Of a stretch of DNA of 64,000 nt, positions 3,117 through 37,165 are shown piece by piece. Positions within the stretch are counted from its first letter, which is position 1, and each line of letters starts with the position of its first letter. The notes under the pieces are model-generated. The model was not told where the DNA came from. It worked only from the letters and a program-made list of their open reading frames with translations, and ran no database searches. This stretch comes from Macrostomum lignano. Lineage: Eukaryota. The DNA lies in NCBI GenBank assembly GCA_002269645.1, contig NIVC01000144.1:1-64000 (forward strand). Reading direction: 5' to 3'. Both the position numbers and the translations under genes were made by a program.

Positions 3117-4129
3117 ATGTCCAGCCTCCTACATCTCGCTGTTCTGTGCGCCCTGCTCTCGGTCTCTGACTGTTTGAACGGAGACAAAATTGCACAGCAC
3201 AAAGTAGCCAACAATGACTGCGTGAACTTGTCGCTCTCGGTGTGGCGGCAGCCGCGACCCTCCGCCTCCCTGCTCGACTGCTTCGTGTCGAGTCGGTCGT
3301 TCCGTCTCGGCAGCGTCGGCGTGGTGCAGCGGAGCAAGCGAGACGCCTCGTGCGCGTTGTTCCGCTTCGGTGAGGTGTGCCGCCTGCTCAACATGACCAG
3401 CTCGTCTACACAGACTGAGGGAGTAGCCGCTGAGAGCACCTGCGAGACCGTGGTGGACTCGGAGTACGACGCGATCGCTGCGAACGAGCACTTCAGCGCT
3501 GTGTGGGTCGGAGACAGGGGACCGGCGCTGGAGAACCTGGTGTGCGGCTCCGAGGGACAGAGGAACCCATGAAGTCGCTCAATGTGACCTGGACGAGTGA
3601 GGGCGCTCGCATGGACGGAGTCTCGTCTCGGCTGTGGGTGGACGACCCCACAGGTCTGGACTTCACGGCGTCCTACACCTGGGTGCTGCACCTGAAGAGG
3701 ACTCCTAAGGTTCAGTGCTACATTGAGCTGGACAATTGCGAATCACTAGGAAGCTCATTCTTAAGCCTCTTTTGGGAACTCAGCTTCATTACAAGCTATA
3801 TGCAATGTCTGTTTTTCTATACTGGCAGCCAAAACTGGCTCCTAAGCGGCTCTGTGCTGCCCGCTGACCCTGAGCGCTTCTTCATCACTGGCTTGACAAC
3901 CGATAAGCCGTCGGGTGAACGCCGATTTCTGCTTGGATCCGCGTTCTTGACCGAGCCGCTGGTCTCTGGCAACGGTTCCAAATTTAATTATAACGATACT
4001 GGCGCCTGCATCAAGATCGGCTGGCGGTCTCCAGGCCAGTTCATATTGAATGGCGTCATTCGCGCCGTCGCTGTGGCCAACTCGGCTGTGACTGAGCAGG
4101 CGGTGCGACAGCTGCTTCAGCAGCCCTGA
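3117..4129 (+). pseudogene. Secreted PAN-like + LamG-like protein, copy A, with a 1-bp frameshift (pseudogene or assembly indel)
   Basis: ORFs 3117-3572 and 3503-4129 join into a full 337-aa paralogue of copy B if one C is restored at 3566-3568 (CCC here, CCCC in the other copies). Confidence 0.85.
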
Positions 4130-5028
4130 AGCTTTGGCTTGGTTGTTGTGAGAAGTTGAAAAATTAATAATTTGTTGCAACAATATTTTATTTGAGCTTT
4201 TAAGTTCTTTACGATTGTCTGAACTGTTATCTGTGCTTCTTTATGCGGCTATTTTACCCACTATCGAAAATGTATTTTTAACGCTTTTAATTACGGATAG
4301 GGAGATAGCATAACAGATCTTTGTTTCTAACTTTCTTTTTTAAGCTCTGTCTAATTTCACCCTCCTTTATTTAGAAGATTAAGCATGTCTCTTGAGAGAG
4401 CTATTGGTATAAATCACTAGGGCTGATGGTGTTTTTGGTCATGAGAAGTCTCGTATTTCAGTCGCGTTGTGTTTTGAAGCAGTAACATTTTTGTAGTGGA
4501 AGATTTTCATTTGAATAACTATTTATTTACATATCATTATCAATGCCTTAGATTTTTAATAAAGGACAAAGCTTTATCATTGCTATTGACAGCTCTTGAC
4601 AAGCTGTAAACCCAATATCTGCATGCGCTTTAATACGTTTTGATTACGCTTTAATACGAAGTGGAGTTAAAAGTACTTCTGTAAGCTTAATCAGAGCGCA
4701 GGAAGCTCGGCCCATCCTTTTGTTCCACGTGGCTCCTGTGCTCGGGCTGGGGGGTTTTAGACGCTGGCGGATCTGGTCTGATCCGATCTTTATCTTTGTT
4801 GCGCAACAGATTTTTCTTTTGTTGTCCCTCTATTGTTATCAATGATTGCCCCTAGTTTTCTCGCTTTTTGCTTTAATTTGTTGTCCACTGACACTGTCTA
4901 TTAGACTCCCCGATTTGTGTTACTAGCAATTTGAATGCGCCAATCTAATATACGGCTCGTAAATCCTCATATTTCGTCTCTTTCACCGCGTGCCCCAGGT
5001 GACAATTGTACTTTTAGAAACAGGCCAG

Positions 5029-5200
5029 TGACGTCAGAAGATCAGAGGCCAATCAGAGAGAGGGAGTCATTGCAATGATCTTAGAGAGAGTCGCGTGACC
5101 GACTTCGGGATTCTATTTAAGCTGGGGATTTTGCGAATCAACCGTCTGCCCTACTGACCCTACTGAGGAGGAGGGCACCTGCATCAGCTTCTTCAAGCCC
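5029..5200. promoter_or_regulatory. Conserved non-coding module (TGACGTCA + CCAATCAG + CACGTG-like site + CCTGCATCAGCTTCTTCAAGCC), repeated at 10844-10980 and 14658-14840
   Basis: Same motif order in all three duplication units. Confidence 0.4.
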
Positions 5201-5506
5201 GCAGCATCAGCAGCCAGCTCTCCCTCTCTCTGTGGCGTCACCAGTGTGTCTGTAATCCTGTATTTAACATGTTCTCTTTGCTCACATTGGGCCCTAACTC
5301 GCTTAGCTCTTTGCCAGATACAAGAGTCGGCTCTGATCGTCTTTATTCATTTTGTTACTCTGTGACCAATAAATTAAAAGAGCACATAAAAAGAATTATT
5401 TTAATCAATAACGCCATCAACTCTGTTTCACTATTGTACTGGCAATTTATTTGTTAATGGCTTGCTAAACCGTTTCGTGATGAAGCATGTGAAACCTGTT
5501 GGAGGC

Positions 5507-5640
5507 TGTGATCCAGTGACCAGTGTGAACCAGTGACCAGTGTGAACCAGTGACCAGTGTGAACCAGTGACTAGTGTGAACCAGTGACCAGTGCGAACCA
5601 GTGACCAGTGTGAACCAGTGACCAGTGTGAACCAGTGACT
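5507..5640. repeat. 17-bp minisatellite (CCAGTGACCAGTGTGAA), ~8 copies
   Basis: Tandem periodicity; the same array recurs at 11322-11795. Confidence 0.95.
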
Positions 5641-8600
5641 GGCGGCGCAATTAGTGTGACAGTGAGCTCGCAGGTTATAGCATTGAAAGGCCAGAAGTGT
5701 CAAAAGCTCTGGACGTATGACTCTTTTTGCACTGAGCAGCTGGAAACGATGGAGTTCACGTTCCCCCGTACTACTCTTAGTAGTCTAGCAGCCACAAGGT
5801 ATAGGGCGTTCTCATCTCCACACAGTTCATCACACTCTCGTCGTGAATTGTTTATTATTTACTAATTCTTGATCTATCAGGCATCACTTCTGCTTACACC
5901 CTCTGCCTGTCTTGGCGGAGTCAATAAAATGCAAAGATCACTGCTGAAAGATATTCGCTGAAATCAGGAAGCACAGCGACACTTTATTGAAAGTTGCAGA
6001 TATGATTTGCTGTAGGCAAGGTGCACTTAGCTGTAGGTTCCCATTTAAGACTGTAGCTTAGGATGTAAACTACTAGAAATATTGAAACCCTGCTAGCTAG
6101 GCTGTCGACAGGATGGCGTTATATTTTTAATTTATCCTAGCAAACTCGAAAAGATAATTCTATTAGTGTTGAGGGTTTTTACTATTAAATGTCTGTCTTG
6201 AAGGTGACAAAATTGTCGAGAGCATGCACCGGTAGTGGAATAAACTGTAACCAGACATCTTTTCTTGATTATTAAAAGATACGAGTGTATTCGTTCGAAA
6301 AATGTCATATGGATCAACTACTTTCTTTTATTGTTATTCCAAAGCTCTGAGCAAATATATAATTCTTTGTTATGCGTTATGACTAACCATGAGCACAATA
6401 TAAAATTGTTGGCACGTATTTTTCTAAGGGCTGCGCATGGCCAGTCTTAAATGTAATCAATATTGTTTAATTGAAAAATTGGGGTTACTGGGAGATAATT
6501 AGCTGATGAGCTATTCCAAGAAATAAATATAAAAAATTCAATATTGTTAAAAGGATAAACCATTCGGTAATTCGTACATAAAAATAAGTAAGAAGGCTTA
6601 CCCGTATGAATAAAGGTTTGTTCTCCGACTTATTCAAAGAGTAAAAGACTGTATGTTCAGAAATCAATCTGGAAAAAGACAGCTTTTGAAAGCCAGTAAC
6701 TCAATATTATTGTCTAGTCACTACGTGGTTGCCTTAAGTGAAAAATCACTGAGGAAGAACCCTTATTACCCCCAGTACAGCTTAGGCACACACCGTGGGA
6801 TAGGTTAATAGTATACACGTATTCGAATACCACTGCAATGCACAAAGATAGATCGGATTTCGAGTTAAATTTGATATATATGCACCAAATTTGAGAACAC
6901 TTCCTTCTGTTACTACCTAGATGTAGTGTTCGACCAGCGGTCTTCCTCAAATTTTGGCAGCGCAGTCAGAGCATCACTGCAATTCGCTTATAGTGCCAGT
7001 TGATTTTCAATAAGTCTCAACAAGTGGCATATGAGAGAAAATGAACTCTGTGCAGCTTTTAGATTTGCTTGATTCAACCATCCTTAGGCCCTGATATTAT
7101 ATCTTGTATATAGTCGGATGCGAATTTCCCAAACTCATTGTAGTTCAGTGTATTTTATTGACACAGAAATACATGTAATTGCTTCTGACATTCTGAGAAT
7201 GTTTCTTCAGCAAATTCTGCTCAAACGAGATTCTATTGTCTGAGAATGTCTGAAAATTGTGATTAAATCAGACTTCAGTAAGGAAATGGTTTTTTAGTAT
7301 CGGCTACTAACAGTAGCATTCTAGACTACTAAGAGTAATTTAACGGAACCTGAACTCCAAGTTATCCAGATGTGAGCAGTGCTGAAGTACACAGTTTGGT
7401 CATTTGATCCAAGGCAATTCTCATCTTGCAGACTTGATATCAGGTAGTACCTGAAAAGTCGAAAAATTCCATCAAAGTTTCTTTCTTTAATTATTCCATT
7501 TTGATGCAAAAATGATACATGAGTTTCAGCGATTGTACGTCAAATATCAACGGTAAAATATGCGTTGGATCAAGCATGAGTAGGAGAGTGAAATAGGATA
7601 ATCCACGAGTCCAATAGGTCACGGGAGACACAGAAACCTTAAATGTGATTAATGGCCTGTCAAAAAATGAGAAAAATTACTTTAGTCACGTGATTTTCCC
7701 AGTGCGCACGGGTCCGAATGCGAGCTTGGTCGGCTGATACCTCAAAAATGTGTGGTTATTTGTGATCCGCAAATTAATAAGTGACACAAAAGGTAAGAAG
7801 AGAATATACATGTAGGAGAGAGGAAAGGATATGAGAAGACATGGCTGGAAAAAGAGAGTGCCATTCCTACTGAAGGTAGAAAGTAAAGTGCAAAGGAGCG
7901 ATCTCATGGAGGAAGAGAGCTTTAATGACGCTAAAGTGACGAAATGAAGCCCAGTTTCTAGCCTACTCAGAATGCTTGGTTATTTCAGACTACTAGCAAA
8001 AGTAGTGATTAATGAATATTAGGAGAAAATGTACCGAAAACGAATGCAAAATATTTGATGCTTGATTTTGATTTGACTTTGATTTGATTCAACTTTTTAA
8101 AGCTAAATATGCAAAGCTTCAGTTTGAAAGATTTCATTTTTGCAAGAGATTTATCTCACGTACTACTACGCGATCATATATAAAAATTCCTGATTAAACC
8201 TCTGGAAGCTCCGTCCTTCTGTCCGGCTTTGAGGATGTACCCATCGGAAGATATCAGTATGATAGCTGATATCTTAGACAAATTATTTGCAAGTATAGCA
8301 GCTTAGCAAGGTGCTGATTTAGGAAGTTGAAAAGTCGCCTGCTTGGTCCTGACAAGCTAGGAGCTATTCATAGCCGAAGAAGCAGGAATGAGTTTGCATC
8401 TCAGCAGAACTTCTTACGATGCAAAAAGCGTTCTCTTTCAAAAAAGTAAAATCCACCAACCCCGAAACTTTTTCTCCATCAAACCCGCAGCTTCGCGGAA
8501 GCCATCCTTTGTTGACTCGGCACACCACCACTGCGTGTGAGAGGAAGCGAGTTTGCCTTGCAAGACAAAGAAGATGGATTTCTAGAATTTGCGAACAGTC

Positions 8601-8960
8601 AGGAAACATCACTGCTTCCGCTAAATATGTTGCCTCGTTAGGAGGCTGTGAACATGAAAAAAAAGCCTGTGTATTGTTCAAGCTACAATGCATCTCGCTT
8701 GCTTTTCTTTGACTCTAATGGTGATCGATCGTTGCCTCAAAGTCAGAACTCTGGCAACCCGCCGCAGAAGTTGCAGCGTCAAGAAAAACAGGCCGTCAAA
8801 ATTATAGACAGGTTGCTGGAGCCAATGAGCAACAAAGCCAATCAGGATGCTTTCACTGATCTGATCAGTGAAGTATATCTGGGACAAAACAGATACCCAA
8901 ACTTTCAAGACACGTGGCTTTTCTTCTACTCACTCACAGAAGCTCGAGACACGCAACTAA

Positions 8961-9974
8961 ATGTCCAGCCTCCTACATCTCGCTGTTCTGTGCGCCCTGC
9001 TCTCGGACTCTAACATTGTGAACGGAGACGAATTTGCACAGCACAGAGTAGCCAACAATGACTGTCTGAACTTTTCGCTGTCGGTGTGGCAGATGCCGCG
9101 ACCCTCTGCCTCCCTACTCGACTGCTTCGTGTCGAGTCGGTCGTTCCGTCTCGGCAGCGTCGGCGTGGTGCAGCGGAACAAGCGAGACGCCTCGTGCGCG
9201 CTGTTCCGCTTCGGTGAGGTGTGCCGCCTGCTCAACTTGACCAGCTCGTCTACATCGACTGAGGCAGTGGCCACTGAGAGCACATGCGAGACCGTGGTGG
9301 ACTCGGAGTACGACGCGATCGCTGCGAACGAGCACTTCAGCGCTGTGTGGGTCGGAGACAGGGGACCGGCGCTGGAGAACCTGGTGTGCGGCTCCGAGGG
9401 ACAGAGGAACCCCATGAAGTCCAGCGGTGTCTTGTGGACGAACGAAGGCGCTCGCATGGACGGAGTCTCGTCTCGGCTGTGGGTGGACGACCCCACAGGT
9501 CTGGACTTCACGGCGTCCTACACCTGGGTGCTGCACCTGAAGAGAACTCCCAAGAAACAGTGCTTCATCGAGCTGGACAATTGCGGATCAATAGGAAGCT
9601 CAGTCTTAAGCCACCTTTGGGAATTCAGCTTGATTACAGGAAAGACGCGATGTCTGTTTTCCAATATTGGCCACCAATACTGGGTCCAAAGCGGCTCTGT
9701 GCTGCCCGCCGACCCTGAGCGCTTCTTCATCGCTGGCTTGACCACCGATAAGCCGTCAGATAAACGCCGATTTCTGCTCGGATCCGCGTTCTTGACTGAG
9801 CCGCTGCACTCTGGCGGCGGTTCCGCATTCAAATTTAACGATGCTGGCGCCTGCATCAAGATCGGCTGGCGGTATCCAACTGGCGGCCTGCTTAAGGGCG
9901 TCATCCGCGCCGTTGCCATGGCAAACTCGGCTGTGACTGAGCAGGCGGTGCGGCAGCTGCTTCAGCAGTCCTAA
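8961..9974 (+). CDS. Secreted PAN-like + LamG/ConA-like protein, copy B (337 aa, intronless)
   Basis: Intact ORF with signal peptide (MSSLLHLAVLCALLS) and Cys-rich N-half. MDGVSSRLWVDDPTGLDFTASYTWVLHLK and KGVIRAVAMANSAVTEQAVRQLL resemble the start and end motifs of LamG_3-type folds; the domain call is from motif recognition only. Confidence 0.88.
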   Translation: MSSLLHLAVLCALLSDSNIVNGDEFAQHRVANNDCLNFSLSVWQMPRPSASLLDCFVSSRSFRLGSVGVVQRNKRDASCALFRFGEVCRLLNLTSSSTSTEAVATESTCETVVDSEYDAIAANEHFSAVWVGDRGPALENLVCGSEGQRNPMKSSGVLWTNEGARMDGVSSRLWVDDPTGLDFTASYTWVLHLKRTPKKQCFIELDNCGSIGSSVLSHLWEFSLITGKTRCLFSNIGHQYWVQSGSVLPADPERFFIAGLTTDKPSDKRRFLLGSAFLTEPLHSGGGSAFKFNDAGACIKIGWRYPTGGLLKGVIRAVAMANSAVTEQAVRQLLQQS

Positions 9975-11321
9975 AGCTTTATTTTTGTTTTGAGAAGTTT
10001 AAAAAGGAATAATTGTAATTTACATCATACGAGAATAATTATCTGAACTGTTTTATGTGTCTTTTTCAATAGTTATTTTACCCAGATTGACATTACGCTA
10101 TATTTCTTTATAGTTCTTGCCTTATAGGTAGCTTGAAACTATTATTTCTTTCCAGCTCCGTCTTATTTCAGCATATTTTTAGCTGAGCAGTTTACTTGCT
10201 GGTTATCTGACTCGAACGTTGTCAAAGCTGTCGTAATTTATCACTGCATGTAGAACACAACAGACTGCTGCAATGTGGTTCCAAGAAGATGATGGCCCTC
10301 ACATATAACAATAACCTTTCTATTTTGTGGAAGCAGAACTTTATTTGTCGACTGTTTATTTACCTCAATACCTTTATTTTTATTTGAAAAGTGGCAGACA
10401 TTTTTGCTATTGTCCTTCTCGACTTGCTGTAGGCCCAACTTCTCAATATTTTTGACAATATAAACCATAATACAGTTTAAATTTTTTTTGCACCATTCAA
10501 TCTTTTGCTGGCAATTTTTGTTTTTATACTGGTAAATTTTTGTACAACTTATATAGCCTCGGTCTGGGGACAGGAAGCCCTTTTTGTTTGTGTGTGGCTT
10601 CTGTGCTTGGGGCTCGGACCCTCTTTTTTGTTGCGCAACCGATTTGTCCTTGTTTTCCCTATGTAATTCTCGATGATTGCACCGGTTTTTCTCCGTTTTG
10701 CTTCTGTTGTTCACTGACCCTATTTAACAGACTCCGGATTTGCGTCGTTGGCTGTCTGAATGCTTCAATCCAGTATAAATCCTCATTTTTCCTCACTTTC
10801 CCGGCGTGCGCCACGTGATAATTGTATCTTTAGAAACAGTCAGTGACGTCAGAATACCAGAGGCCAATCAGAGAGAGGGAGTCATTGCAATGACCTTTGA
10901 GAGAGTCACGTGAATTCGCCTTAACCGTCTACGAAACTGACCATACTGAGGACGGTACCTGCATCAGCTTCTTCAAGCCTGCAGCATCTGTTCTCTCTCT
11001 CTACCTCTCTCTTTCTCTCTGTCTCTCTGTTGCTGAGTCTATAATCCTGTCTGTACATGCTTGCTTGCCTCACATGGGGTCTTAACCCACTTAGCTCTTT
11101 GCTAGGAATAAGAGTATGCTCTGATTGTCTTAATTCATTAATTTATTTACTCTATACAGAAATAATTAAAAGATCAAATGCACCGAATTATTTATTTTCT
11201 GTTTATTTTCCTCCGTAATTACCGCCATCAACTGTCTCACCCTTTTACTCGTAATTTAATTATTATTGACTTGCTAAACCGTTTTGGTGATTAAGCATAG
11301 GGAATCTGTTGGAAGATGTTA

Positions 11322-11795
11322 ACCTGTGACCAGTGTGAACCAGTGACCAGTGTGAACCAGTGACCAGTGTAAACCAGTGACCAGTGTGAACCAGTGACTA
11401 GTGTAAACCAGTGACCAATGTGAACCAGTGACTAGTGTAAACCAGTGACTAGTGTGAACCAGTGACCAGTGTGAACCAGTGACCAGTGTGAACCAGTGAC
11501 CAGTGTGAACCAGTGACCAGTGTGAACCAGGGACCAGTGTGAACCAGTGACCAGTGTGAACCAGTGACCAGTGTGAACCAGTGACCAGTGTGAACCAGTG
11601 ACCAGTGTGAACCAGTGACCAGTGTGAACCAGTGACCAGTGTGAACCAGTGACCAGTGTGAACCAGTGACCAGTGTGAACCAGTGACCAGTGTGAACCAG
11701 TGACCAGTGTGAACCAGTGACCAGTGTGAACCAGTGACCAGTGTGAACCAGTGACCAGTGTGAACCAGTGACCAATGTGAATCAGTGACCAGTGT
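11322..11795. repeat. 17-bp minisatellite, ~28 copies
   Basis: Tandem CCAGTGACCAGTGTGAA; homologous position to 5507-5640. Confidence 0.97.
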
Positions 11796-12469
11796 CTCCT
11801 GTGCCTAAAAATCATTAAAATGGCACAGCTCGGCTCATTGGTTTTATGAATCCATTTTGTCATTCTTAGCTGACTGTATAACAATATGTGGTAACAGAGA
11901 TGATAAAATAGATTCACAAAACCAATAAATCATGCTGTGCCATGCAACGGAAATGTACGTAGAATAAAAAATTAGCATTGAATCCTAATTTTCTGAACAA
12001 GAAGCAAATATATTTTGCGATTATACATAGCAAAAGTAGTGATCAATGAGTATTAGGAGAAAATGCTAACCAGCAATTAATGGAAGTCAATTGAAATTGA
12101 CAAATTGCTGATAAAACCTCTGGGAACTCTGCCTTCTGTAGGGCTTTGAGGATGTACGTACATGTATCAGAAGATATCAGTATGGTAGCTGACCTCTTAG
12201 ACAAATTTATTGGCAAGTATAGCAGCTTAGCAAGATGCTGATTTAGGAAGCTGAAAAGTCGCCTGACTACTAGGAGCTAGGAGCTATTTATAGCCAAATA
12301 AGCAGGAATGAGTTGCATATCAGCATGACTTCTTTTGATGCAAAAAGTGGTTTCTTTAAAAAAAGTAATATGCTCGTAATACTAATGATAATCGATTACA
12401 ACTGCCTGAGCAGATGTGCAACCGACAGCTCAGCCGCAGCTATTGCGCAGCGCATCTGAAGGCTGCGTA

Positions 12470-13219: not shown

Positions 13220-14251
13220 ATGTCAAGGCTCCTACATCTCGCTGTTCTGTGCGCCCTGCTCTCGGTCTCTGACTGTGTAAACGGAGACAAAACTACACAG
13301 CACAGAGTAGCCAACAATGACTGCCTGAACTTGTCGCTCTCGGTGTGGCAAATGCCGCGAGCCTCCGCCTACCTGCTCGACTGCTTCTTGTCGAGTCGGT
13401 CGTTCCGTCTCGGCAGCGTCGGCGTGGTGCAGCGGAACAAGCGAGACGCCTCGTGCGCGCTGTTCCGCTTCGGTGAGGTGTGCCGCCTGCTTAACATGAC
13501 CAGCTCGTCTACACCGACTGAGGGAGTGGCCGCTGAGAGCACTTGCGAAACCCTGGTGGACTCGGAGTACGACGCGATCGCTGCGAACGAGCACTTCAGC
13601 GCTGTGTGGGTCGGAGACAGGGGACCGGCGCTGGAGAACCTGGTGTGCGGCTCCCATGGACAGAGGAACCCCATGAGGTCCAGTGGTGTCTCATGGACGA
13701 ACGAAGGCGCTCGCATGGACGGAGTCTCGTCTCGGCTGTGGGTGGACGACCCCACAGGTCTGGACTTCACGGCGTCCTACACCTGGGTGCTGCACCTCAA
13801 GAGAACTCCAAGGGTTCAGTGCTTCATCGAGCTGGACAATTGCGGATCATTAGGAGGCAGCTCATTCTTAAGCCACTTTTGGGAATATTGCCGTGGTTCA
13901 TTAGAGACGCGATGTCTTTTTTCCAATATTGGCGGCGATAAATGGGTGGTGCACACGGGCTCTGTGCTGCCCGCCGATCCTGAGCGCTTCTTCATCGCTG
14001 GCTTGTCAACAGATAAGCCGTCAGGTGAACGCCAATTCCTGCTCGGATCCGCGTTCTTGACTGAGCCCCTGAAATCTGGCAACGGGTCCACATTAAAATA
14101 TAACGACACTGGCGCCTGCGTCAAGATCGGCTGGCGGGATGCAAGCTCGTCAGCGTTCAACGGATTTTTCCAGGGCGTCATCCGCGCAGTCGCCATGACG
14201 AACTCGGCCGTGACTGAGCAGGCGGTGCGGCAGCTGCTTCAGCAGCCCTGA
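13220..14251 (+). CDS. Secreted PAN-like + LamG/ConA-like protein, copy C (343 aa, intronless)
   Basis: Intact ORF, paralogous to copy B over its full length; signal peptide. Confidence 0.88.
   Translation: MSRLLHLAVLCALLSVSDCVNGDKTTQHRVANNDCLNLSLSVWQMPRASAYLLDCFLSSRSFRLGSVGVVQRNKRDASCALFRFGEVCRLLNMTSSSTPTEGVAAESTCETLVDSEYDAIAANEHFSAVWVGDRGPALENLVCGSHGQRNPMRSSGVSWTNEGARMDGVSSRLWVDDPTGLDFTASYTWVLHLKRTPRVQCFIELDNCGSLGGSSFLSHFWEYCRGSLETRCLFSNIGGDKWVVHTGSVLPADPERFFIAGLSTDKPSGERQFLLGSAFLTEPLKSGNGSTLKYNDTGACVKIGWRDASSSAFNGFFQGVIRAVAMTNSAVTEQAVRQLLQQP

Positions 14252-14680: not shown

Positions 14681-14682
<2 letters not shown>

Positions 14683-14747
<65 letters not shown>
14683..14747. repeat. 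(GA)n microsatellite
   Basis: Direct; expanded from the short GAGAGAG present at the same place in units A and B. Confidence 0.95.
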
Positions 14748-19697: not shown

Positions 19698-20699
19698 TTA
19701 CACTCCGAAGAAAATTTTATTGATGGTTTCTTCCGGTAGATTCGTATTAGAAACCGCCACGGCTCTGACCACACCATTAAGCATGAAGGTGCCGTCATAC
19801 CGCCAGCCCACATGGATGCAGGCTCCGGCTTGGTTAAAGCTGTTCGTCCGAGCGAAGACGCCGGCAGTCGGTAGAAACTTTGATCCATAGAAGAAGCGAG
19901 TCAGGTTCTGCTGCCTCCTGAATGAGACGCCAGCGATGAAGAACTCGTTCGGGTCCGCAGGCAGCACCGAGCTGGTCTGGAATCTGGCGAAGTAACCCGG
20001 GTTCAGGAAGAGGGCGCGACTCACTCCGGACATTACTGAGTATTCTTGCAGGTGGTCGAGCATGCTGCCGGATCCGATGCAGCTGCTCAGTTCTAGAAAG
20101 CTAGCTAAACCTGGGGTTCTCTTCAGGTGCAGCACCCAGGTGTAGGATGCCGTGAAGTCCAGACCTGTGGGGTCGTCCACCCACAGCCGAGACGAGACTC
20201 CGTCCATGCGAGCGCCCTCACTCGTCCAGGTCACATTGAGCGACTTCACGGGGTTCCTCTGTCCCTCGGAGCCGCACACCAGGTTCTCCAGCGCCGGTCC
20301 CCTGTCTCCGACCCACACAGCGCTGAAGTGCTCGTTCGAAGCGATCGCGTCGTACTCCGAGTCCACCACGGTCTCGCAGCTGCTCTCAGCGGCCACTCCG
20401 GCAGTCGGTGTCGTCGAGGTCATGTTGAGCAGGCGGCACACCTCACCAAAGCGGAACAGCGCGCACGAGGCGTCTCGATTGTTCCGCTGCACAACGCCGA
20501 CGCTGCCGAGACGGAGAGAGCGACTGGACGAGAAACAGTTGATCATTGAGGCCGAGGGCTGAGGCCTCTGCCACACCGCCAACGACAAGTTCAGGCACTT
20601 ACGCTTTGACATTTTCAGCTTCGTGATTTGGAGGCTCTTTTGAGCATTGCAGCTGACTAGCAGGGCACTCAAAACTATTAAGAAGAAGACAGTATTCAT
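19698..20699 (-). CDS. Secreted PAN-like + LamG/ConA-like protein, copy D (333 aa from MNTVFFLIVL), inverted and divergent
   Basis: Intact ORF; the ATG at 20699 begins a signal peptide; core nearly identical to A-C while the N-terminus and C-half are strongly diverged. Confidence 0.88.
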   Translation of the reverse strand: MNTVFFLIVLSALLVSCNAQKSLQITKLKMSKRKCLNLSLAVWQRPQPSASMINCFSSSRSLRLGSVGVVQRNNRDASCALFRFGEVCRLLNMTSTTPTAGVAAESSCETVVDSEYDAIASNEHFSAVWVGDRGPALENLVCGSEGQRNPVKSLNVTWTSEGARMDGVSSRLWVDDPTGLDFTASYTWVLHLKRTPGLASFLELSSCIGSGSMLDHLQEYSVMSGVSRALFLNPGYFARFQTSSVLPADPNEFFIAGVSFRRQQNLTRFFYGSKFLPTAGVFARTNSFNQAGACIHVGWRYDGTFMLNGVVRAVAVSNTNLPEETINKIFFGV

Positions 20700-27100: not shown

Positions 27101-30038
27101 GTAGCATACACATTAGCCATATGGCAGTGAATTTCTATAGGCTTTGAGTCCTCTAGTGTTTGGAATTTGATAATAAAGCTAGTGCTTAGCTCTATGCTTA
27201 AGATGCAATTCTTGTATAGATGCCATGATATGCTAGAAATACAATGGTACTGTGACCTGTTGGCAATGGATTTGAGACTGAAATAATGAATGACTAATAT
27301 AGACTTTTTGAATACTTGTATGCTGGAGTTTTGGAGCTTTAATGTCTAGGGATCTTGGTCAGGCTCAACTATTGTATTTGTGACAGGCCTTTTGTCCCTG
27401 TCTTTTTAAACTCCTAACTATTGATGCTAGTATTTATTAATATCCTACAAGCTGCCACCAAAGCTGTTGTAGGGGTATTCCCATCTGCTAACTAAAGTTT
27501 ATCCTAATTGCACTTCTATTTTCACTCTAACTGTTTCTTAGGATTTCATTTGAATATACTGGTAGCATCTTATGTATTAGTCTGGTAGCGTCTTATGTAT
27601 TAGTCTGGTAGCGTCTTATGTATTAGTCTGGTAGCGTCTTATGTATGGCCTGAGTGGTCTAGTACTGGTTCATAAACTTATTAGATTGTCCTAGTCAGGC
27701 CTTCACTGGGATTAGAGGGTCATAGCACAACTCTCAGAATTTCCCTTGTATATCTCCCAATCCCTTCTCTTAGTAATTTTCTGAGCACTATTGCTCCCTC
27801 TTTCCTTAAAATAACTAACTCAATAAGATTTCAAAGTTTATCTGAGAATATAGAATGAACCAATGTTATAGCGCACAAATATTTCAAGAGCAAGAAAAGG
27901 TTACTTTTATTTGGGCAAAATTCACTCATATATATAGGATTCGGGAAGGCTAAGTTATAACAAAAAATTTTTTCCATTTATAATTCGCTATTTAAAACAA
28001 AGTAGAATAGTGTTTCTTAGTTTGCACGCTAATTCAGTTTTACTGTAGTTTAAGCAATTTTTGCGTGTATAATAGGATCAGCAAAGTTACAATGATCTAT
28101 TAAGGTATAATTATAGAACAAACATTCTATTATAGGCACTAGCAAATGACTTATTAAAGTATTATAGAGACATATTATAGGCACTGGTAAATATTGCTTC
28201 TCATATGCACCTAACATCTTTTTATGCAATATAATCCAATATACCTCTATTTAAATTGTTTGTTGGTAGGCATTAGTCTATATATATTTATGTATTTGTT
28301 TAAAATCATATTTAACAATTTGTTATCAAATCAAGCTTAGCCTTATACTATCTAGTCAGAACTTTTCCCATGACAAAACATGTGTTGTGACAAAGAAATT
28401 GCGTAATGCTAGGCTTTTTTAGGAATTGGAAATTCAGAATTAATGTGTTTTTTTTTAATATATGCATTGTATTTGTAAGAATGCTAGAGAAAAGAGATTA
28501 GTTTTATTTAGGCTTTTTTGACCTTATTTACTTAGGCTAGCAAATTATAGATATTAGGCCTTTTTTGTTAGAAACTTCTTTATATTATTATATTTTGCCA
28601 TTATAGGATCTTTTTATTAGCATAGTGGGCATAAAATGAATGAAACCATTATATTTCCTTAGTTATAACCACAAGAGCAGTTTTTTCATAAACATAATTG
28701 TAGCTATTGTTGTTACCTGTTGTATTACATTTGCCATAGGTATATTATTGTTAATTATTTATAATCAAAGCAATAAAATGGTATAAAAACTGAGTTTATT
28801 GTTCTTATTATTATCAGTCATATTTTTTTCACTTTTATTGATCTATGTTACCAAGAAAATAAATTTTGTTTTTGCAATTTATAATTCGAAACAATTTTTT
28901 GAAAAATTTAAACTTGACCATTGTCAGATCAAATTCAATGAAAAATATTCTAAATATTAAATTTTCTTGTAATGATTTAATTCAATTCTTATTTACCTAA
29001 AGATATCAGGTCGAAAAATTAGGGATCTGCTGTGCTTCTGACTTGAATCATATTCCAGTAGTATTCATCTGTTTACATGCACCTGTCATATTAACAGATT
29101 GGCACAAGCCTGGTTAAAGTGCAAGTCAGTCGAAAAAAGTCGGTCACAATTCGCGAACTTGGAGGCTCAATGGCACCTGTTTGGCCAGACTATTATAGCG
29201 ATGTGGCTGCCATCATTGTGAGTTTAGCAGCTTTGTAATTAGACTCTGTTAAAATGATAGCAAACTATATGGCCATATCTTCAGTCACTTGGCCAGCCTC
29301 CCAGATCCTCAGTTGCTGGGCCAGCCTCCCAGATCCTCAGTTGCTGGGCCAGCCTCCCAGATCCTCAGTTGCTGGGCCAGCTTCCCAGACCCTCAGTTGC
29401 TGGGCCAGCCTCCCAGATCCTCAGTTGCTTGGCCACCAGCCCCCCGATCCTCAGTTGCTTGGCCACCAGCCTCCCAGATCCTCAGTTGCTGAGCCACCAC
29501 CCTCCAATATCCTCAGTTGCTGCGCTAGCCTTGCAGATCCCCAGTTGCTGTGTTTCTGTCACCCTGTTAGATCCACAAGGCAAATAACACTTGTAATGCA
29601 TTTAAATTCAATATGAGTATAATATGCGTAATAAATAAATAAATATTGCCACCCACACTGCCAACTTATCCATGCAGTTTGTAGTTGACGCATCAAACCT
29701 GCAGCAGGTTGGTGCTGCCACCATCCAGTTCATTCACCTGTTGAACAGTCCGCAAACTCAGAGCTCCAAAATTTTGCTGTTGTTTAATAAACTGTGAGTG
29801 ACCTGACTGTCTCTTTGTTTCATTCATCATATCATTTGTTCACTAAATATGATTCATGTGTGCAATTCATTCCAGCGACCTTGTAACATCAGAAGCTGAC
29901 AAAGGCAAATTTATGCACCTATTCATGCTGGACGATATACTTCGTCACTCCAGACAAGAGGTGTCTGTTGCCGAAGTTTCCGCTCTTAATAGAACCGGCT
30001 TTGCCGCCATGAAAGAGTGGCTTGAACTTTGTGCTTGA
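24143..30038 (+). CDS. ARL16: ADP-ribosylation factor-like 16; exons 24143-24244, 29098-29217, 29678-29793, 29876-30038 (~166 aa)
   Basis: MALLIGPSSVGKSLLLKRL P-loop; TIRELGGSMAPVWPDYY (ARL16-typical RELGG); FVVDASN; LLLFNKLD; EVSALNRTG. All introns are GT-AG with consistent phases. Confidence 0.9.
25715..26180. mobile_element. Possible decayed MITE with ATCC(CG/TA)GGAT internal repeats and a GATTGCAATCCCTA-type end
   Basis: Related palindromic motifs at ~25715-25735 and 26090-26178. Confidence 0.35.
26440..27520 (-). mobile_element. Decayed mariner transposase relic in ARL16 intron 1
   Basis: Minus strand gives ESK*ESK*WLPVGSPAPLKAR...SASKIILIVFWDSKGLLLLDFL, LHDN, LPHLAYLPDLALGDF (from the YSPDLAPSD motif) and a C-terminal KGDY. 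Confidence 0.8.
29290..29545. repeat. ~29-bp minisatellite (CCAGCCTCCCAGATCCTCAGTTGCTGGG) in ARL16 intron 2
   Basis: Tandem periodicity. Confidence 0.9.
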
Positions 30039-30089
30039 CTCTATTCAGTTTATTGTGTACTACTTACATGTCGCTAGTGGACTGCTTAA

Positions 30090-30705
30090 CCTCGCCCAAG
30101 CCCCTATGGACTAGCCAACCAATCAGCGATTGCCCTCCTCACTCCCTGCCCAACCTCCATTGACTAGCCGACCAATCAGCGATCGCCCCGCCTCACTCCC
30201 TGCCCAACCCCGCCCAAGCCCCTATGGACTAGCCGACCAATCAGCGATCGCCCCGCCTCACTCCCTGCCCAACCTCCATTGACTAGCGCCAACCAATCAG
30301 CGATCGCCCCGCCTCACTCCCTGCCCAAGCCCCTATGGACTAGCCGACCAATCAGCGATTGGCCTCCTCACTCCCTGCCCAACCTCCATTGACTAGCGCC
30401 AACCAATCAGCGATCGCCCCGCCTCACTCCCTGCGCAAGCCCCTATGGACTAGCCGACCAATCAGCGATTGGCCTCCTCACTCCCTGCCCAACCTCCATT
30501 GACTAGCGCCAACCAATCAGCGATCGCCCCGCCTCACTCCCTGCGCAAGCCCCTATGGACTAGCCGACCAATCAGCGATTGGCCTCCTCACTCCCTGCCC
30601 AACCTCCATTGACTAGCCGACCAATCAGCGATCGCCCCGCCTCACTCCCCGCCCAACCCCGCCCAAACCACTATGTACTAGCCGACCAATCAGTGATCGC
30701 CCGTC
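30090..30705. repeat. ~55-bp tandem array, each unit carrying RRCCAATCAG and most a CCCCGCC-like box; upstream of the caspase
   Basis: 11 CCAATCAG copies counted; two unit variants alternate. Confidence 0.92.
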
Positions 30706-31054
30706 TCATCCCTGCACTAAAAGTTGATGTGATCAATGTTTCTATATCTTTTTTAATACTATTTGTTCTTTTTATCTGTAATCTTTGTCGCTTTTTTGTA
30801 TGCGACTTTGTTAAGCATTCTGTCTTATAACTTTTACGCATTATCAAAACGTGATAGAATATTTATTTGAAGATCAGAAATACTACTTAGTAGATTTTTA
30901 TTGTGCGAGCGTATTTGAACTGTAAATAAAAACTTACGATTTTTAATTTTAGCTCACTTTCCATTTTAAAACATTTAGTTTCTTTAAAGAGAACAATAAA
31001 AACTTTTGCGTCTGTTTAAACGCAATTGTATTTATTGATTGACTTTGCAGCCAA

Positions 31055-34000
31055 ATGGCGGACTCGAGCGATGCCGCGGTGAGGCCAAAAAACGAGAAAA
31101 AACGACGAACTGAACGCGGCAGATCTGGCGGCTTTTTGTCGCTTTTCGGTTGCGCCAGTTCAAAGAGTTCTTCGCCTCCTCCGATTGCTAAGTCGGAGCA
31201 GAGGACTGAGCAAGTTGCTGCTCCACCTGCTGTCAATCATAACAGCACCGCTGCTCCTGCTGCTGCAGCGGCTGCCCACTCTTCTGCTGGTGCTAAAGAG
31301 TATGCTTATTGTGCTTTGTTTTTTATAATTTTATGTACTTATTTTCAACCCCTTCTTTTCCACCACCCCACATATCTCTACCCCTCCTGTGCACCCACCC
31401 CACTTATCTCTCTACCCCTCCTGTGCACCCACCCCACTTATCTCTCTACCCCTCCTGTGCACCCACCCCACTTATCTCTCTACCCCTCCTGTGCACCCAC
31501 CCCAATTTTCTCTCTACCCCTCTTGTGAACCCACTCCAATTTTCTCTCTACCCCTCCTGTGCACCCACCCCAATTTTCTCTCTACCCCTCCTGTGCACCC
31601 ACCCCACTTATCTCTACCCCTCCTGTGCACCCACCCCAATTTTCTCTCTACCCCTCCTGTGCACCCACCCCAATTTTCTCTCTACCCCTCCTGTGCACCC
31701 ACCCCAATTTTCTCTCTACCCCTCCTGTGCACCCACCCCAATTTTCTCTCTACCCCTCTTGTGAACCCACTCCAATTTTCTCTCTACCCCTCCTGTGCAC
31801 CCACCGCAATTTTCTCTCTACCCCTCCTGTGCACCCACCCCAATTTTCTCTCTACCCCTCCTGTGCACCCACCCCACTTATCTCTACCCCTCCTGTGCAC
31901 CCACCCCACTTTTCTCTCTACCCCTCTTGTGAACCCACCCCAATTTTCTCTCTACCCCTCCTGTGCACCCACCCCAATTTTCTCTCTACCCCTCCTGTGC
32001 ACCCACCTCATATCTCTCTACCCCTCCTGTGCACCGACCCCACTTATCTCTCTACACCTCCTGTGCACCCACCCCAATTTTCTCTCTACCCCTCCTGTGC
32101 GCCCACCCCAATTTTCTCTCTACCTCTCCTGTGCACCCACCCAAATTTTCTCTCTACCCCTCCTGTGCACCCACCCAAATTTTCTCTCTACCCCTCCTGT
32201 GCACCCACCCAAATTTTCTCTCTACCCCTCCTGTGCACCCACCCAAATTTTCTCTCTACCCCTCCTGTGCACCCACCCAAATTTTCTCTCTAACCCTCCT
32301 GTGCACCCACCCAAATTTTCTCTCTACCCCTCCTGTGCACCCACCCCATTCTCTCTATATCTTCTATTGGCCACCGACTTTCCAGAGCTGCAACTGTCAG
32401 CGATCAATCATTTGACCCGAAGCACGTGTACAACATGAGACACCGGAGCAGAGGCCTGGCTTTGATATTCAACTTTCAACAGTTCCTACCCGAGACCAAC
32501 CTGTCCTATCGACACGGCTCGGATAAGGACCTTAACAATGTAGTGGCCTCGTTCAAGCGGCTGCAGTTTCAGGTGCACAAGTTCAGCAACCTGTATGCTG
32601 TTGAGTTTCTTAGCCAGCTGAAACAAGGTATGGTTTTTAATTTTCGGTTTAAGAAAGAATCTCCATTTTTTCATAAAATAATTTTTGTAGTTTATTACTC
32701 TGAAATCTCACCCTTAAATGCTGAGATCTCACGTTAAGATACTGGAATCTCACCCTAAATATTAAAATCTCACCCTAAGATACTGAAATCTCATCCTAAG
32801 CTACTGATATCTCACCCTAAGCTACTGATATCTCACCCTAAGCTACTGATATCTCACCTAAAGATACTGAAATCTCACTCTAAGGTACTGAAATCTCACC
32901 ATAAGGTACTGAAATCTCTCCCTAAGATACTGAAATCTCACCCTAAGCTACTGATATCTCACCCTAAGCTACTGATATCTCACCCTAAGATACTGAAATC
33001 TCACCCTAAGATACTGAAATCTCATCCTAACGTACTGAAATCTCATCCTAAGTTACTGAAATCTCACCCTAAGATACTGGAATCTCACCTAAGATACTGA
33101 AATCTCACCGTAGGATACTGAAATCTCACCGTAGGATACTGAAATCTCACCGTAGGATTCTGAAATCTCACCGTAGGATACTGAAATCTCACCGTAGGAT
33201 ACTGAAATCTCACCGTAGGATACTGAAATCTCACCCTAACGTCCTGAAATCTTACCCTAAGATACTGAAGTCTCACTCTAAATTTGAAGTTTTCATCCGC
33301 GAGTTTTCAATCTAGGAAAGAATGCACAAAAATGTTCACAAAGATGCTTGAACGACTCCCTCGCTACTCCTGCCCAGTGTCTGAGGTGAACCACAGCGAC
33401 CACGACGCCATTGCCATAGTGATCATGTCCCACGGCGAGGAGGGCGTCATCTTTGCCAGCGACGGAGGCATCCCCCTGGTTGAGGTGTTCGAGCCTATCA
33501 GACAATGTCCCTCTCTGGTTGGCAAGCCAAAACTCTTCTTTCTGCAGGCCTGCCGTGGCAGCAAGTTCGACCCCGGCAAAGAGCAGGTAAGGATTGCTTC
33601 AATTTTGAACCTGTCAATCACTTGTGTCATTGAACAACTGGCCACTAAAACTGTTAATCACTTGTCACTTGATCTGTCATTGAACCTATCAATCACTTGC
33701 TCTTTACCTGTCACTGAACCTGTCAATCACTTGTCACTTGTTCTGTTACTGAACCTGCCAATCACCTGTCACTTGACCTGTCAATCACTTGTCACTTGTC
33801 CTGTTACTGAACCTGTCAATCACTTGTCACTTGACCTGTCACAGGACCTGTCAATCACCTGTCACTGGACCTGCCAATCACCTGTCACTTGACCTGCCAA
33901 TCACCTGTCACTTGACCTGTCACTGAACCTGCCAATCACCTGTCACTGGACCTGCCAATCACCTGTCACTTGACCTGCCAATCACCTGTCACTTGACCTG

Positions 34001-34572
34001 TCACTGAACCTGCCAATCACCTGTCACTTGACCTGTCACTGAACCTGCCAATCACCTGTCACTTGACCTGTCACTGAACCTGTGAATCACTTAACTTTGA
34101 ACTCATTAAGTGACAGGTGAAGTGATAGGTAATGAACTCAAAGTCATTACTGTTTTCAAAGTTACATGTAACTCAAAGCTGAAATATTTGACCATAAACC
34201 TGTCAGACGGACTCCGGTGTGGAGGAGACTGAACCCGAGGCCTTCAGACGCGCTTTGGACGCCGCTGACGGCATCAAGACCATCCAGCGGCTGCCGACTG
34301 ACGCAGACTTTCTCATCTGCTATTCGGTGGTGCCTGGCTATTTCTCCTGGCGCAATGGCACCCACGGATCCTGGTTTGTGCAGAAACTGACCGAGGTCCT
34401 GGCTGAGACAGACTGCTCCAAGGTTGAGTTCATGCGAGTCATGACTCGGGTTAACCGGGCGGTGGCCTACGAGTTTGAGTCGCACACGAACAATCCTCAC
34501 CTGGATAGAAAGAAGCAGGTGCCATCTATTGTGTCCATGCTTACTAAGGAGCTGTACTTTCCATCGAAGTGA
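31055..34572 (+). CDS. Effector-type (caspase-3/7-like) caspase; exons 31055-31299, 32401(or 32386)-32627, 33378-33586, 34207-34572 (~348 aa)
   Basis: YNMRHRSRGLALIFN; catalytic MSHG and QACRG intact; DAAD linker; DADFLICYSVVPGYFSWRN..GSWF; SMLTKELYF. Splice phases are consistent and there is no CARD/DED. Confidence 0.92.
31370..32350. repeat. ~33-bp minisatellite filling caspase intron 1
   Basis: Units such as CTCTCTACCCCTCCTGTGCACCCACCCCAATTTT. Confidence 0.95.
32740..33280. repeat. ~21-23-bp minisatellite filling caspase intron 2
   Basis: Units such as ATACTGAAATCTCACCCTAAG. Confidence 0.95.
33605..34085. repeat. AATCACCTGTCACTTGACCTG-type minisatellite in caspase intron 3
   Basis: Tandem periodicity. 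Confidence 0.92.
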
Positions 34573-35394
34573 CTCGCGCTCGTAAAGGCGAAGTTTATGA
34601 ATAACTAAATATTTTACTTCAAATTTTAAAGAGAAAAATAAGTGATTTCCTTGATGCTGTTTTGGGACTGTTACGAGTATTAGTGTTGTATGAAATAAGG
34701 TTTGGTGTGTCTGTTTAATTAAATCAGTTTTCTTAACGAGTATTAAATGCTTGTTATTGATTTTAACAAAACCAAATAAAGTTGCTTTCAATTCATTTTA
34801 ATCGTCTTCTTCTGCATTCTAAAAAATTGTTTTGTTATTCGATTTTATAGGCTTACTCATCCGCGAAATATCCTACTTATGCTACTTACAGTAATTGCTT
34901 TACTGCTCAGTAAGTAGTGCAGCTCGATTGCGAATACAATTTTGTGCAATAGTAACTTAATTTTTGTACTTATAATTAGATAAGCTTGTTTTGCCATATA
35001 TTCACTCTATTTGAATATTTCAGTTTGACTGGTGACAATGCCTGTGCGGATTACTCGTATTTTACATACGCTGTGTTTCTATTTTTTACTTTGTGTCAAA
35101 ATATCAGTCTATTTAATTACTTTACGGGTAAAATTTTTATAAAATTATCATAAATCAACCATTTTTGCGCGATATGCTACTTAAAGTGCGTGTGTGTACA
35201 CCGTCTTTTATTTTTATCTTGGTCAACAATTACACGAAAATCAATTTTTTGTTAACCTAATTGTCGCAGGCTCGCGATCAACTAATTTAAATGCTTTTGC
35301 ACTTTATTTTTAAAAAATATTTAAAAAAAATTTTCTAATTATTTAAACGGACGTTGTGTACTTTTACCATACTGATAGGTGACGAAAATCACCT

Positions 35395-35690
35395 TTGGAA
35401 ACATGTTTTTCGATACATATCGGCAATTGTGTCACTAATAATAATCCGGTTTAGTTTTAATTAAGCAGAGACGGTGCTCAGCACGGTGAGAATCTGCTCT
35501 GACAAAGTGGAATGTTGCCATCCGCATCAGATTCGAGCAGCTGGACCAGCTCCTCCACTTTGCTTGGGTCTATTAACACCTCATCTAATGCTCATCTAAC
35601 ACCTGCGGGTGACGGTTATAGATGTTACATATGAGTGTCATATGGGTGTTAGATATGATTGTTAGTTATGGGTGTTAGATATGGACTAGC
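35395..35690 (-). pseudogene. Internally deleted duplicate of the last exon and flanks of the calmodulin-like gene
   Basis: Close match to 44215-44520, including the 3' flank, the ELVQLLE segment, the acceptor CCGTCACCCGCAG and the start of the TATGGGTGTTAG repeat. Confidence 0.8.
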
Positions 35691-35904
35691 AATCAGCGCC
35701 CCCCGTTGGGGAGCCAAAAAATGCAGCACAAGTTTTTTTAATAAACTACATGTAAGCGTCTGTTTGCATTGTACCTCAGCAACCCCTTGTAAGCCTTGAC
35801 ATGTCAGCAATTCCCCCCCCCCACAAGCCTTAGCATATCAACTCCCCCTTGACATCTCAGCAATGCCCCCATAAGCCTTGAAATCTTAAAAAAATCTGTC
35901 AACC

Positions 35905-35950
35905 TTCTAACCCTAACCCTAGCCTACCCTAACCCTAACCCTAACCTTAA
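35905..35950. repeat. Short interstitial telomere-like (CCCTAA)n
   Basis: CTAACCCTAACCCTAGCCTACCCTAACCCTAACCCTAACC. Confidence 0.7.
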
Positions 35951-36291
35951 AGCATTGAAATTTCAGTAATTCTCTCCGAGAGTCATTATAGCACTACAGG
36001 ATTATAGCGATTCCCTGCAAGCCTCGACATCGTAGGGATTCCCAAATGAATCTCTCAACTTCGACATGATGCCGATATTCTAGGCTATCACCTGTAAGCT
36101 TCATAGCTGCCCTGAGCAGCATATAGTCCCTATAAATTATTTAAATAAATGGCCAGAGGGGATCCATGAGCCCACCAGAGATTCAGAGGCTTAGTTTGGG
36201 GAAAAAAATGGCAAATTTATTTATAAGCCTGGCAGAGCAACTGCACAGGTCTCCATCTCCAAGCTCAGTTATTCCCAGCAGCCAGCTTCAA

Positions 36292-37165
36292 ATGGATTCT
36301 CCTAGCAACGGAGTTTTCCTGTGATTTTTCGCTGCCATTCTCATAGTAGATGTGGCGAGTCAGTCTTCGGTCAGCCAGCACAGGCAGACAGATTCAAAGT
36401 GTCTGAACGTGTCGTTGTCGGTGTGGCAGCTGCCGCAACCCTCCGCCTCCCTGCTCGACTGCTTCGTGTCGAGTCGGTCGTTCCGTCTCGGCAGCGTCGG
36501 CGTGGTGCAGCGGAACAAGCGAGACGCCTCGTGCGCGCTGTTCCGCTTCGGTGAGGTGTGCCGCCTGCTCAACTTGACCAGCTCGTCTACACCGACTGCG
36601 GGAGTGGCCGCTGAGAGCAGCTGCGACACCGTGGTGGACTCGGAGTACGACGCGATTTCTGCAAACGAGCACTTCAGCGCTGTGTGGGTCGGAGACAGGG
36701 GACCGGCGCTGGAGAACCTGGTGTGCGGCTCCCATGGACAGAGGAACCCCATGAAGTCCAGCGGTGTCTCGTGGACGAACGAAGGCGCTCGCATGGACGG
36801 AGTCTCGTCTCGGCTGTGGGTGGACGACCCCACAGGTCTGGACTTCACGGCGTCCTACACCTGGGTGCTGCTCCTGAAGAGAACACCGGGTGACCAATGT
36901 TTCATGGAGCTGTCTGCAGATGCCGCAGCGGGAGGTGGCCCAGCCGATCATTTCTGGGGGTACAGCAGCGTTCCTGGTTTGAAGCGCTGTTTGCACCTGT
37001 TTCCAGGTGCACCCATGGCTTACCAAACAGTTCGTCATTGTTGGATTGTCGTTTAACAGATCGGCGCCCAGGTGCAAGTTCTTCTTCGAGACTGCGTTTG
37101 TGCCGGAGACTTTCAACAAAACGCAAACCGTTGTGTTCAACCAAACCGATGCTGGCCGGTGCTAT
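36292..37165 (+). pseudogene. Secreted PAN-like + LamG-like protein, copy E (pseudogene)
   Basis: ATG at 36292 is in frame with ORF 36352, but TGA at 36322-36324 interrupts the signal peptide. A frameshift/deletion near 37005 leads into QFVIVGLSFNRSAPRCKFFFETAFVP (homologous to copy D); the C-terminus is lost. Confidence 0.85.

Follow-up and report, generated by a model that had tools for sequence, protein, structure and literature searches.

The first 64,000 nucleotides of contig NIVC01000144.1 from the flatworm Macrostomum lignano (hereafter, the window) carry a cluster of related genes, and this cluster raises the question of how one segment of 486 bp can be nearly identical in DNA, third codon positions included, in five gene copies that are otherwise strongly diverged. 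We propose that repeated gene conversion among the copies, going beyond constraint on the protein, keeps this segment (the core) near-identical, and we put the probability of this explanation at about 70%. The process as such, segmental concerted evolution among clustered genes for secreted proteins, is well known; the protein family in question was previously undescribed.

The five copies, A to E, had been listed in an earlier, sequence-only reading of the window, and the list of open reading frames (ORFs) together with our alignment placed them where that reading had put them. Copy B (8961-9974, plus strand, 337 aa), copy C (13220-14251, plus strand, 343 aa) and copy D (20699-19698, minus strand, 333 aa) are intact ORFs, and D has a leader class and a C-terminal class of its own. 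Copy A (3117-4129, plus strand) is full-length with a broken frame, as seen in the ORF list (3117-3572 and 3503-4129), the alignment and the frame translations: a 1-bp deletion in a run of C residues at 3566-3568, inside the core, causes a frameshift, which may reflect either a pseudogene or a homopolymer error of the assembly. Copy E (36292-37200, plus strand) is decayed. Its ATG at 36292 meets a stop ten codons further on (36322-36324), leaving it without a usable start, and its 3' half is frameshifted, bears a deletion and lacks the terminal GV.RAVA..N motif; an ORF over the core (36352-37056) is retained. We also found a sixth copy that was absent from the earlier list, fragment F (2625-2813, minus strand), about 300 bp upstream of copy A. 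By blastn and tblastn it is a dead, inverted piece of an A/B/C-type copy spanning the boundary between the core and the variable part, with 79% identity to nucleotides 525-707 of B in blastn and stop codons in tblastn. Copies A, B and C form a set of tandem duplicates with upstream and downstream DNA in common too, whereas D and E have only the core in common with them and no similarity in the flanking non-coding DNA.

The core comprises codons 35-196 and is common to the five copies, with fragment F overlapping its 3' boundary. It occupies positions 9063-9548 in B (plus strand), as delimited by similarity, synonymous divergence (dS) and a breakpoint scan, 3219-3705 in A (plus strand; blastn and breakpoint scan) and 13322-13807 in C (plus strand; similarity and breakpoint scan). 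In D, the core (20113-20597, minus strand) is the sole stretch that resembles A, B, C and E at the DNA level, and in E (36400-36887, plus strand) its frame is open and 94% identical to B despite the decay elsewhere. Breakpoints were sought in pairwise comparisons with a two-breakpoint maximum chi-square test and 200 permutations. In every pair involving D or E, the test returned a low-divergence block from nucleotide 103 of the coding sequence to nucleotide 585-591; divergence in these pairs was 0.045-0.11 within the block vs. 0.51-0.62 outside, and none of the 200 permutations gave a value as high as the one observed.

The silent sites behaved in the same way. The dS, calculated by the Nei-Gojobori method, was non-uniform along the gene and showed a deep trough in the core: for the strict core (codons 63-197), all ten pairs gave values of 0.05-0.17, whereas D or E compared with the other copies gave 0.58-1.4 in the N-terminal flank and values above 2 or saturated in the C-terminal flank. 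Three sub-blocks of the core (nucleotides 181-270, 331-420 and 487-585) differed by only 0.7-3.9% in all ten pairs, and the residual core differences lay in a Ser/Thr-rich linker and in one patch of 25 bp. At the protein level, the identity of B and D was 86% over the core but 45% over the C-terminal half. The core was also richer in GC than the variable part (0.64 vs. 0.54), and the GC content of third codon positions (GC3) was 0.79-0.83 in the core, as against 0.64-0.66 for the C-terminal half (Fisher tests for each copy, p = 3e-5 to 3e-3). Several statements of the sequence-only reading were thereby borne out, namely the near-identical block of about 480 bp that extends to third positions, its higher GC content, and the sharp drop in similarity right after the KRTP motif, for which the B and D peptides had been quoted correctly. 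The start that had been assigned to the block, RLGSVGVVQR, holds for D; in E the tightest identity begins at CLNVS.

A dS trough could also be obtained if the copies were young duplicates, of an age given by the core dS of ~0.1, with flanks that diverged fast through focal hypermutation or diversifying selection, as in cone-snail toxins. The sharp boundary of similarity would suit such a history, and so would the ratio of nonsynonymous to synonymous divergence (dN/dS) in parts of the A/B/C trio, which was 0.85-3.2 over aa 198-246, directly past the boundary, and about 1 (0.9-1.2) over aa 286-322. However, even the best case of dN exceeding dS, the A-B pair over aa 198-246 with 24 nonsynonymous vs. 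2 synonymous changes, did not reach significance (one-sided Fisher p = 0.08). The flank dS of D and E is itself saturated, and these two copies lack any flanking non-coding similarity to A/B/C. Between D and A/B/C, the C-terminal half has a dN/dS of ~0.3 with saturated dS and retains the strand motifs SVLPADP..FFI.G, GACI..GWR and GV.RAVA..N, and thus the C-terminal half of D reflects old divergence and not hypermutation. A D-type C-terminal half is also found in P0002, a M. lignano gene model described below, and so it represents a stable lineage of its own. We consider recent duplication followed by fast flank divergence very unlikely.

The "hypervariable" C-terminal half of the sequence-only reading is accordingly to be divided. 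Most of it shows old divergence under purifying selection, and what is left of the original idea are the two patches in A/B/C, with dN/dS of ~1-3 that is not significant. For the whole C-terminal half, A/B/C gave a dN/dS of 0.55-0.96, and the segments at aa 247-285 and 323-343 gave 0.12-0.4. The fast patches fit both diversifying selection and relaxed constraint, neither of which is proven. The contrast between the core and the C-terminal half comes mainly from divergence that was erased in the core and ancient divergence that was retained elsewhere. Even within the young A/B/C trio, the three core blocks differed by 0.7-1.8%, as compared with 14-23% in the adjacent upstream non-coding DNA, roughly a tenfold difference.

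The distribution of variable sites within the core speaks more directly for exchange. The 21 informative core sites fell into seven two-by-three partitions that are mutually incompatible: ten sites group A with D, four D with E, two B with E, two C with E, and one each A with C, A with E and C with D. Such incompatible patterns require exchange between paralogues. All ten A+D sites are confined to nucleotides 462-486 of the coding sequence (25 bp), and elsewhere A is B/C-type. In this patch (3577-3601 in A, plus strand), A carries the D-type sequence LNVTWTSE, which includes a sequon for N-glycosylation, and differs from D by 0.02 vs. 0.15-0.22 from B and C; judged by these site patterns, conversion has acted here on a short tract of a gene that otherwise resembles B and C. 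The GC3 excess of the core is an expected trace of GC-biased conversion.

A second kind of exchange is seen in P0002 (UniProt A0A1I8H0C0). Its leader is A/B/C-type (82-94% identity vs. 42% to D) and its C-terminal half is D-type (72% identity vs. 40-49% to A/B/C), and it is therefore a paralogue recombined across the core. We also noticed that P0002 is internally damaged and that its gene model is fused to reverse-transcriptase and integrase-like sequence, meaning that it sits among retroelement remains. Together with the dS trough, the mosaic sites, the GC3 excess and the core retained in the decayed copy E, this recombinant upholds the earlier idea of a 5' scaffold homogenised at the DNA level.

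An assembly or polishing artefact, in which reads from paralogues were mixed in the repeated core and the consensus converged, would leave a similar impression. The genome is rich in repeats, and the indel in copy A is of the homopolymer-length type that is typical of long-read assemblies. On the other hand, private core substitutions are present in every copy (22 in D, eight in C, seven in A, six in B and five in E) next to discrete mosaic patches, the same core is carried with other flanks by the independently produced M. lignano models P0001 and P0002, and the pattern is repeated in a sister subfamily on independent metagenome contigs. We regard such an artefact as highly improbable.

Fragment F and the more distant paralogues show what the core looks like outside the exchanging group. 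In the core part of F, 59-60 of 65 positions match (~91%), with indels, whereas differences among the five copies amount to 0-2% in this region. The variable part of F shows 83-85% identity to B/C. The outgroup paralogue P0003 has a core protein identity of 49% and a C-terminal identity of 25-35%, and P0004 and P0025 reach 35% and 25-31%, respectively, in these two parts. The core is therefore not intrinsically invariant, and ordinary constraint predicts merely a modest contrast between the halves.

These comparisons bear on an explanation without any conversion, in which very strong purifying selection on the protein would be combined with constraint on silent sites. The latter would come from a functional element overlapping the core, be it a gene on the opposite strand, an RNA with a conserved structure, a regulatory sequence or the target of a small RNA. 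As this explanation would have it, no other segment of the protein is as well conserved between the subfamilies, and antisense ORFs of 162-248 aa, all on the minus strand, overlap the GC-rich core in A (3110-3691), B (8957-9511) and E (36360-36848 and 36394-37140). Antisense ORFs as the cause of silent-site conservation were rejected: none of at least 150 aa is present in C and D. Open antisense frames would not be unusual in GC3-rich coding sequence, and those seen here are most likely a by-product of the high GC3. In addition, Rfam finds no RNA family in the window, the mosaic of incompatible sites needs exchange among the copies, the core is retained in the decayed copy E, and in paralogues outside the group the core is just 35-49% identical. 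Constraint alone thus seems to us an unlikely source of the pattern.

The searches for relatives pointed to a lineage-restricted multigene family. Among 5.8 billion sequences, the sole close relative of the copies was P0001 (UniProt A0A1I8IQ62), a M. lignano model, for which an exact-product look-up matched no contig. When 1.84 billion cluster representatives were searched with a profile, there were only 23 matches. All those with a named source are from M. lignano (P0002, P0005, P0006, P0010, which is PAA88331.1, P0013, P0015, P0016 and P0023); the others come from JGI or ENA contigs of about 1 kb, apart from P0022 on an ENA contig of 1.1 Mb and P0003, known from a MetaClust record only. Every identifiable relative is therefore from Macrostomum lignano, which makes restriction to this lineage the apparent distribution. 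No characterised family was matched, in line with the earlier reading, which had not recognised it as a named family, and our literature searches found nothing on the family nor on gene conversion in Macrostomum.

The environmental contigs, L001-L004 from three JGI samples, proved informative. They carry a sister subfamily that is ~27% identical to the window proteins, and their 5' part is near-identical in DNA up to the homologous ...LRLKR.P. Third-position differences were 0.20-0.33 before LKR.P vs. 0.58-0.67 after it, and GC3 was 0.60-0.73 before the boundary vs. 0.48-0.60 after. By these measures the sister subfamily repeats the same core/variable pattern, with the boundary at the equivalent place. 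A scan of metagenome DNA with the sister-subfamily core returned only an already known contig. Contig L001, which carries P0014, ends (~1560-1680) with part of another family member (IMTSDPNEFVKIGIAASPVSS...), and so these contigs appear to be genomic, with clustered copies, and not transcripts. Contigs L002 and L003, from different JGI samples, have identical upstream sequence and leader (MHHALILHCLISGHALLALVCLVQLANC), then ~40 differing codons, and then are identical again, which suggests a second variable island near the N-terminus in the sister subfamily. At the 5' ends of the same two contigs, shortly after the called ORF begins, TTTCAG|G may mark a 3' splice site.

The two subfamilies also have the two-state patch in common. 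It is located at the start of the predicted jelly roll (9422-9446 in B and the equivalents in A, C, D and E; L002 vs. L001, L003 and L004). The state [LIV]NVT[WF]TSE, which contains an N-glycosylation sequon, is present in A, D, P0001, P0002, P0025, P0007 and P0008, and the state [SI]GV.WT[NK]E in B, C, E, P0004, P0012, P0014 and others. The occurrence of both states in both subfamilies may reflect a retained ancient dimorphism or convergence.

The intact products are ~335 aa long and encoded by single small intronless genes. They start with a hydrophobic leader, predicted by AlphaFold2 (AF2) as a helix over residues 2-16, from which we infer, as had been suggested before, that the products are secreted. 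The leader is followed by a domain of ~110 aa (N-domain; aa 35-145 of B) with six cysteines that are invariant family-wide (C35, C55, C79, C88, C109 and C143 of B). This domain had been labelled PAN-like, a label that found no support: a profile search of the PDB with the N-domain gave no PAN or Apple chain at E <= 10, and hhalign against an apple alignment of plasminogen, HGF and factor XI gave a probability of 0.13%, aligning only the C-x-F-x-[FY]...C-x-L motif. For want of support, the PAN/Apple idea was rejected. The AF2 predicted local distance difference test (pLDDT) score was below 50 over aa 16-149 in both runs.

For the C-terminal ~190 aa, the prediction was better. With a 4-sequence alignment the pLDDT was 29.8, and a confident C-terminal model was obtained only after adding distant homologues; with the resulting 15-sequence alignment, AF2 gave an all-beta sandwich of ~13 strands, with pLDDT of 70-92 over aa 150-337. 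Foldseek found 192 matches in the PDB at E <= 0.001, the top ones all ConA-like/LamG-type (E = 4e-7, probability 1.00): the lectin-like domain of trypanosome (trans-)sialidases, the sialic-acid-binding module CBM40 (target-normalised template modelling score 0.54-0.60), the jelly roll of the receptor-binding domain of botulinum neurotoxin, and the LamG domain of NEL. The homologue P0014 has a weak precomputed match to PF13385 (Laminin_G_3), with none on record for P0001, P0004, P0025 and others, and NCBIfam gave no match. The terminal motif G-x-[IV]-R-A-V-A-x-x-N-x-x-[LM]-[TS]-x-x-E-[IV] resembles the usual ending of LamG_3 domains. The C-terminal part is thus predicted to be a ConA-like/LamG_3-type jelly roll, an assignment made at the fold level, and the LamG/ConA part of the earlier proposal stands at that level. 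In this model, the homogenised block ends inside the jelly roll, past its first strands, and not at a domain border.

Several points weigh against our interpretation and should be considered together. It is based on five copies in one window, the conversion cannot be dated, and silent-site constraint is not fully separable from conversion. Purifying selection certainly contributes to the conservation of the core, where protein identity between subfamilies is likewise highest (35-49% vs. 25-35%). The call of copy E as a pseudogene assumes that the gene has no introns. As for the protein, the AF2 model, built on the 15-sequence alignment, has a mean pLDDT of 60.5, the weak Pfam match belongs to the homologue P0014 and not to the window proteins, and neither phmmer with copy B nor hmmsearch with a 19-sequence family profile gave a PDB match of relevance at E <= 10. 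Look-ups of the exact B, C and D products in public gene and protein collections found no record of them and no evidence of expression, and ligand binding is pure inference.

Taking both sides into account, we favor a mechanism in which repeated, short-tract, GC-biased conversion would act between the copies over the 486-bp core, which encodes the N-domain together with the first jelly-roll strands, with the decayed copy E also taking part. The leader, and the ~140 aa of the jelly roll that lie past the core, would then belong to old classes that evolve separately (A/B/C; D, also represented by P0002; E; and P0001). Conversion could stop past LKRTP because the classes are too diverged to pair there, and tracts that overwrite the class-specific half would probably also be removed by selection. 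Being common to the copies, the core could serve as a crossover point as well, at which leaders are recombined with C-terminal halves. The outcome would be a constant N-terminal module joined to class-specific remainders of a lectin-like jelly roll.

What this arrangement does for the animal is a separate matter. The products may have glycans or other proteins as ligands, whose choice would depend on the variable half, and it is plausible that this occurs in a recognition, adhesion or reproductive role. Immune, allorecognition, adhesive and reproductive functions, all suggested in the earlier reading, would be candidates. Alternatively, the genes could form an ordinary birth-and-death family, in which the C-terminal differences are neutral or due to relaxed drift, with no recognition role. 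This would be in agreement with two or three of the six window copies being broken, with the damage to P0002 and its embedding in retroelement sequence, with the dN/dS of A/B/C over the whole C-terminal half, and with the lack of expression evidence in the public collections. However, B, C and D are intact, the C-terminal half of D evolves at a dN/dS of ~0.3, the slow segments of A/B/C (aa 247-285 and 323-343) are kept at low ratios, and the divergent sister subfamily keeps the same organisation. We find drift of this kind possible, though doubtful. In a further reading, the core could be a recombination hub, at which the germ line (or, far less likely, somatic cells) reassorts leaders and C-terminal binding halves of a secreted lectin-like receptor or effector, using the broken E, A, F and P0002 as donor cassettes. 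In such a case, the two-state glycosylation patch may be a second switchable element. We mention this as a speculative and improbable extension of the conversion that we propose.

The neighboring genes (caspase, DEG/ENaC and divergent tubulin) are ordinary metazoan ones and gave no functional clue to the family. An ORF at 33284-33892 (plus strand) matches the large subunit of caspases 3/6/7, including QACRG (E = 9e-18), and runs into a 58/81-bp tandem array at 33706-34090. A channel exon of the DEG/ENaC type (FaNaC/ASIC-like; E = 2e-15) is located at 40947-41819 (minus strand), adjoining an ORF of 354 aa at 39705-40769 (minus strand). The ORF at 51212-52876 (plus strand, 554 aa) matches alpha-tubulin from about residue 79 with its residues 2-336 (E = 1e-48); it lacks the first ~78 residues of the fold and ends in a long tail that is acidic and of low complexity. 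This ORF may represent a gene, or one exon, of a divergent member of the tubulin family. Judged by eye, the C-terminal part of an ORF at 46410-46997 (minus strand) resembles the EF-hands of calmodulin. Many long minisatellite arrays, whose units measure 10-220 bp and are repeated up to 129 times, are present at 404-911, 11317-11795, 30094-30660, 31375-32356, 32700-33281, 38524-39221, 45599-46401, 47138-48116, 48781-50066, 53630-54285, 57097-57736, 61218-61918 and 62708-64000, and they account for most of the long spurious ORFs and the segments of extreme GC skew in the window.

The cluster offers a compact example of its kind with internal controls: an escaped paralogue, a converted decayed copy, an unconverted dead fragment, a recombinant and a replicate subfamily. 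With these, one could measure in a laboratory flatworm how long the tracts are, how strong the GC bias is and how conversion interacts with selection. The cluster also defines an uncharacterised secreted family that joins a six-cysteine domain to a predicted LamG-like jelly roll. If the divergent halves set specificity, the family would be a candidate for a system of recognition, adhesion or reproduction in an animal that serves as a model for regeneration and sexual conflict.

Compared with known proteins, the family resembles the Laminin_G_3 (PF13385)/ConA-like lectin-glucanase superfamily in the predicted beta-sandwich of ~190 aa that Foldseek matched, but differs from it in the fusion to an N-domain without detectable relatives and in the lack of HMMER similarity to solved members. 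Segmental concerted evolution by inter-locus gene conversion is known, e.g., from MHC genes, globins, opsins and KIR. The flatworm cluster is like these systems in its dS trough with breakpoints, mosaic sites, GC-rich tract and participation of a pseudogene; the boundary, however, lies inside one intronless exon and inside a structural domain, and is matched in a subfamily of ~27% identity. In conotoxin superfamilies, a conserved signal and pro region, including its silent sites, is followed by a hypervariable mature toxin, the two being encoded by separate exons, with clear dN > dS. The constant 5' part with conserved synonymous sites, the abruptly divergent 3' part and the apparent secretion are similar here, but the flatworm genes consist of one exon, their variable half is mostly under purifying selection, and their constant part bears the marks of conversion. 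Finally, the SmPoMuc mucins of Schistosoma mansoni and the FREP lectins of Biomphalaria are clustered secreted recognition proteins diversified by recombination or conversion. Clustering and exchange between paralogues are features that they have in common with the present family, and SmPoMuc are also flatworm proteins. Their domains are unrelated to those described here (mucin repeats in SmPoMuc; immunoglobulin-superfamily and fibrinogen domains in FREPs), and their recognition role is established, whereas that of the family in the window is putative.

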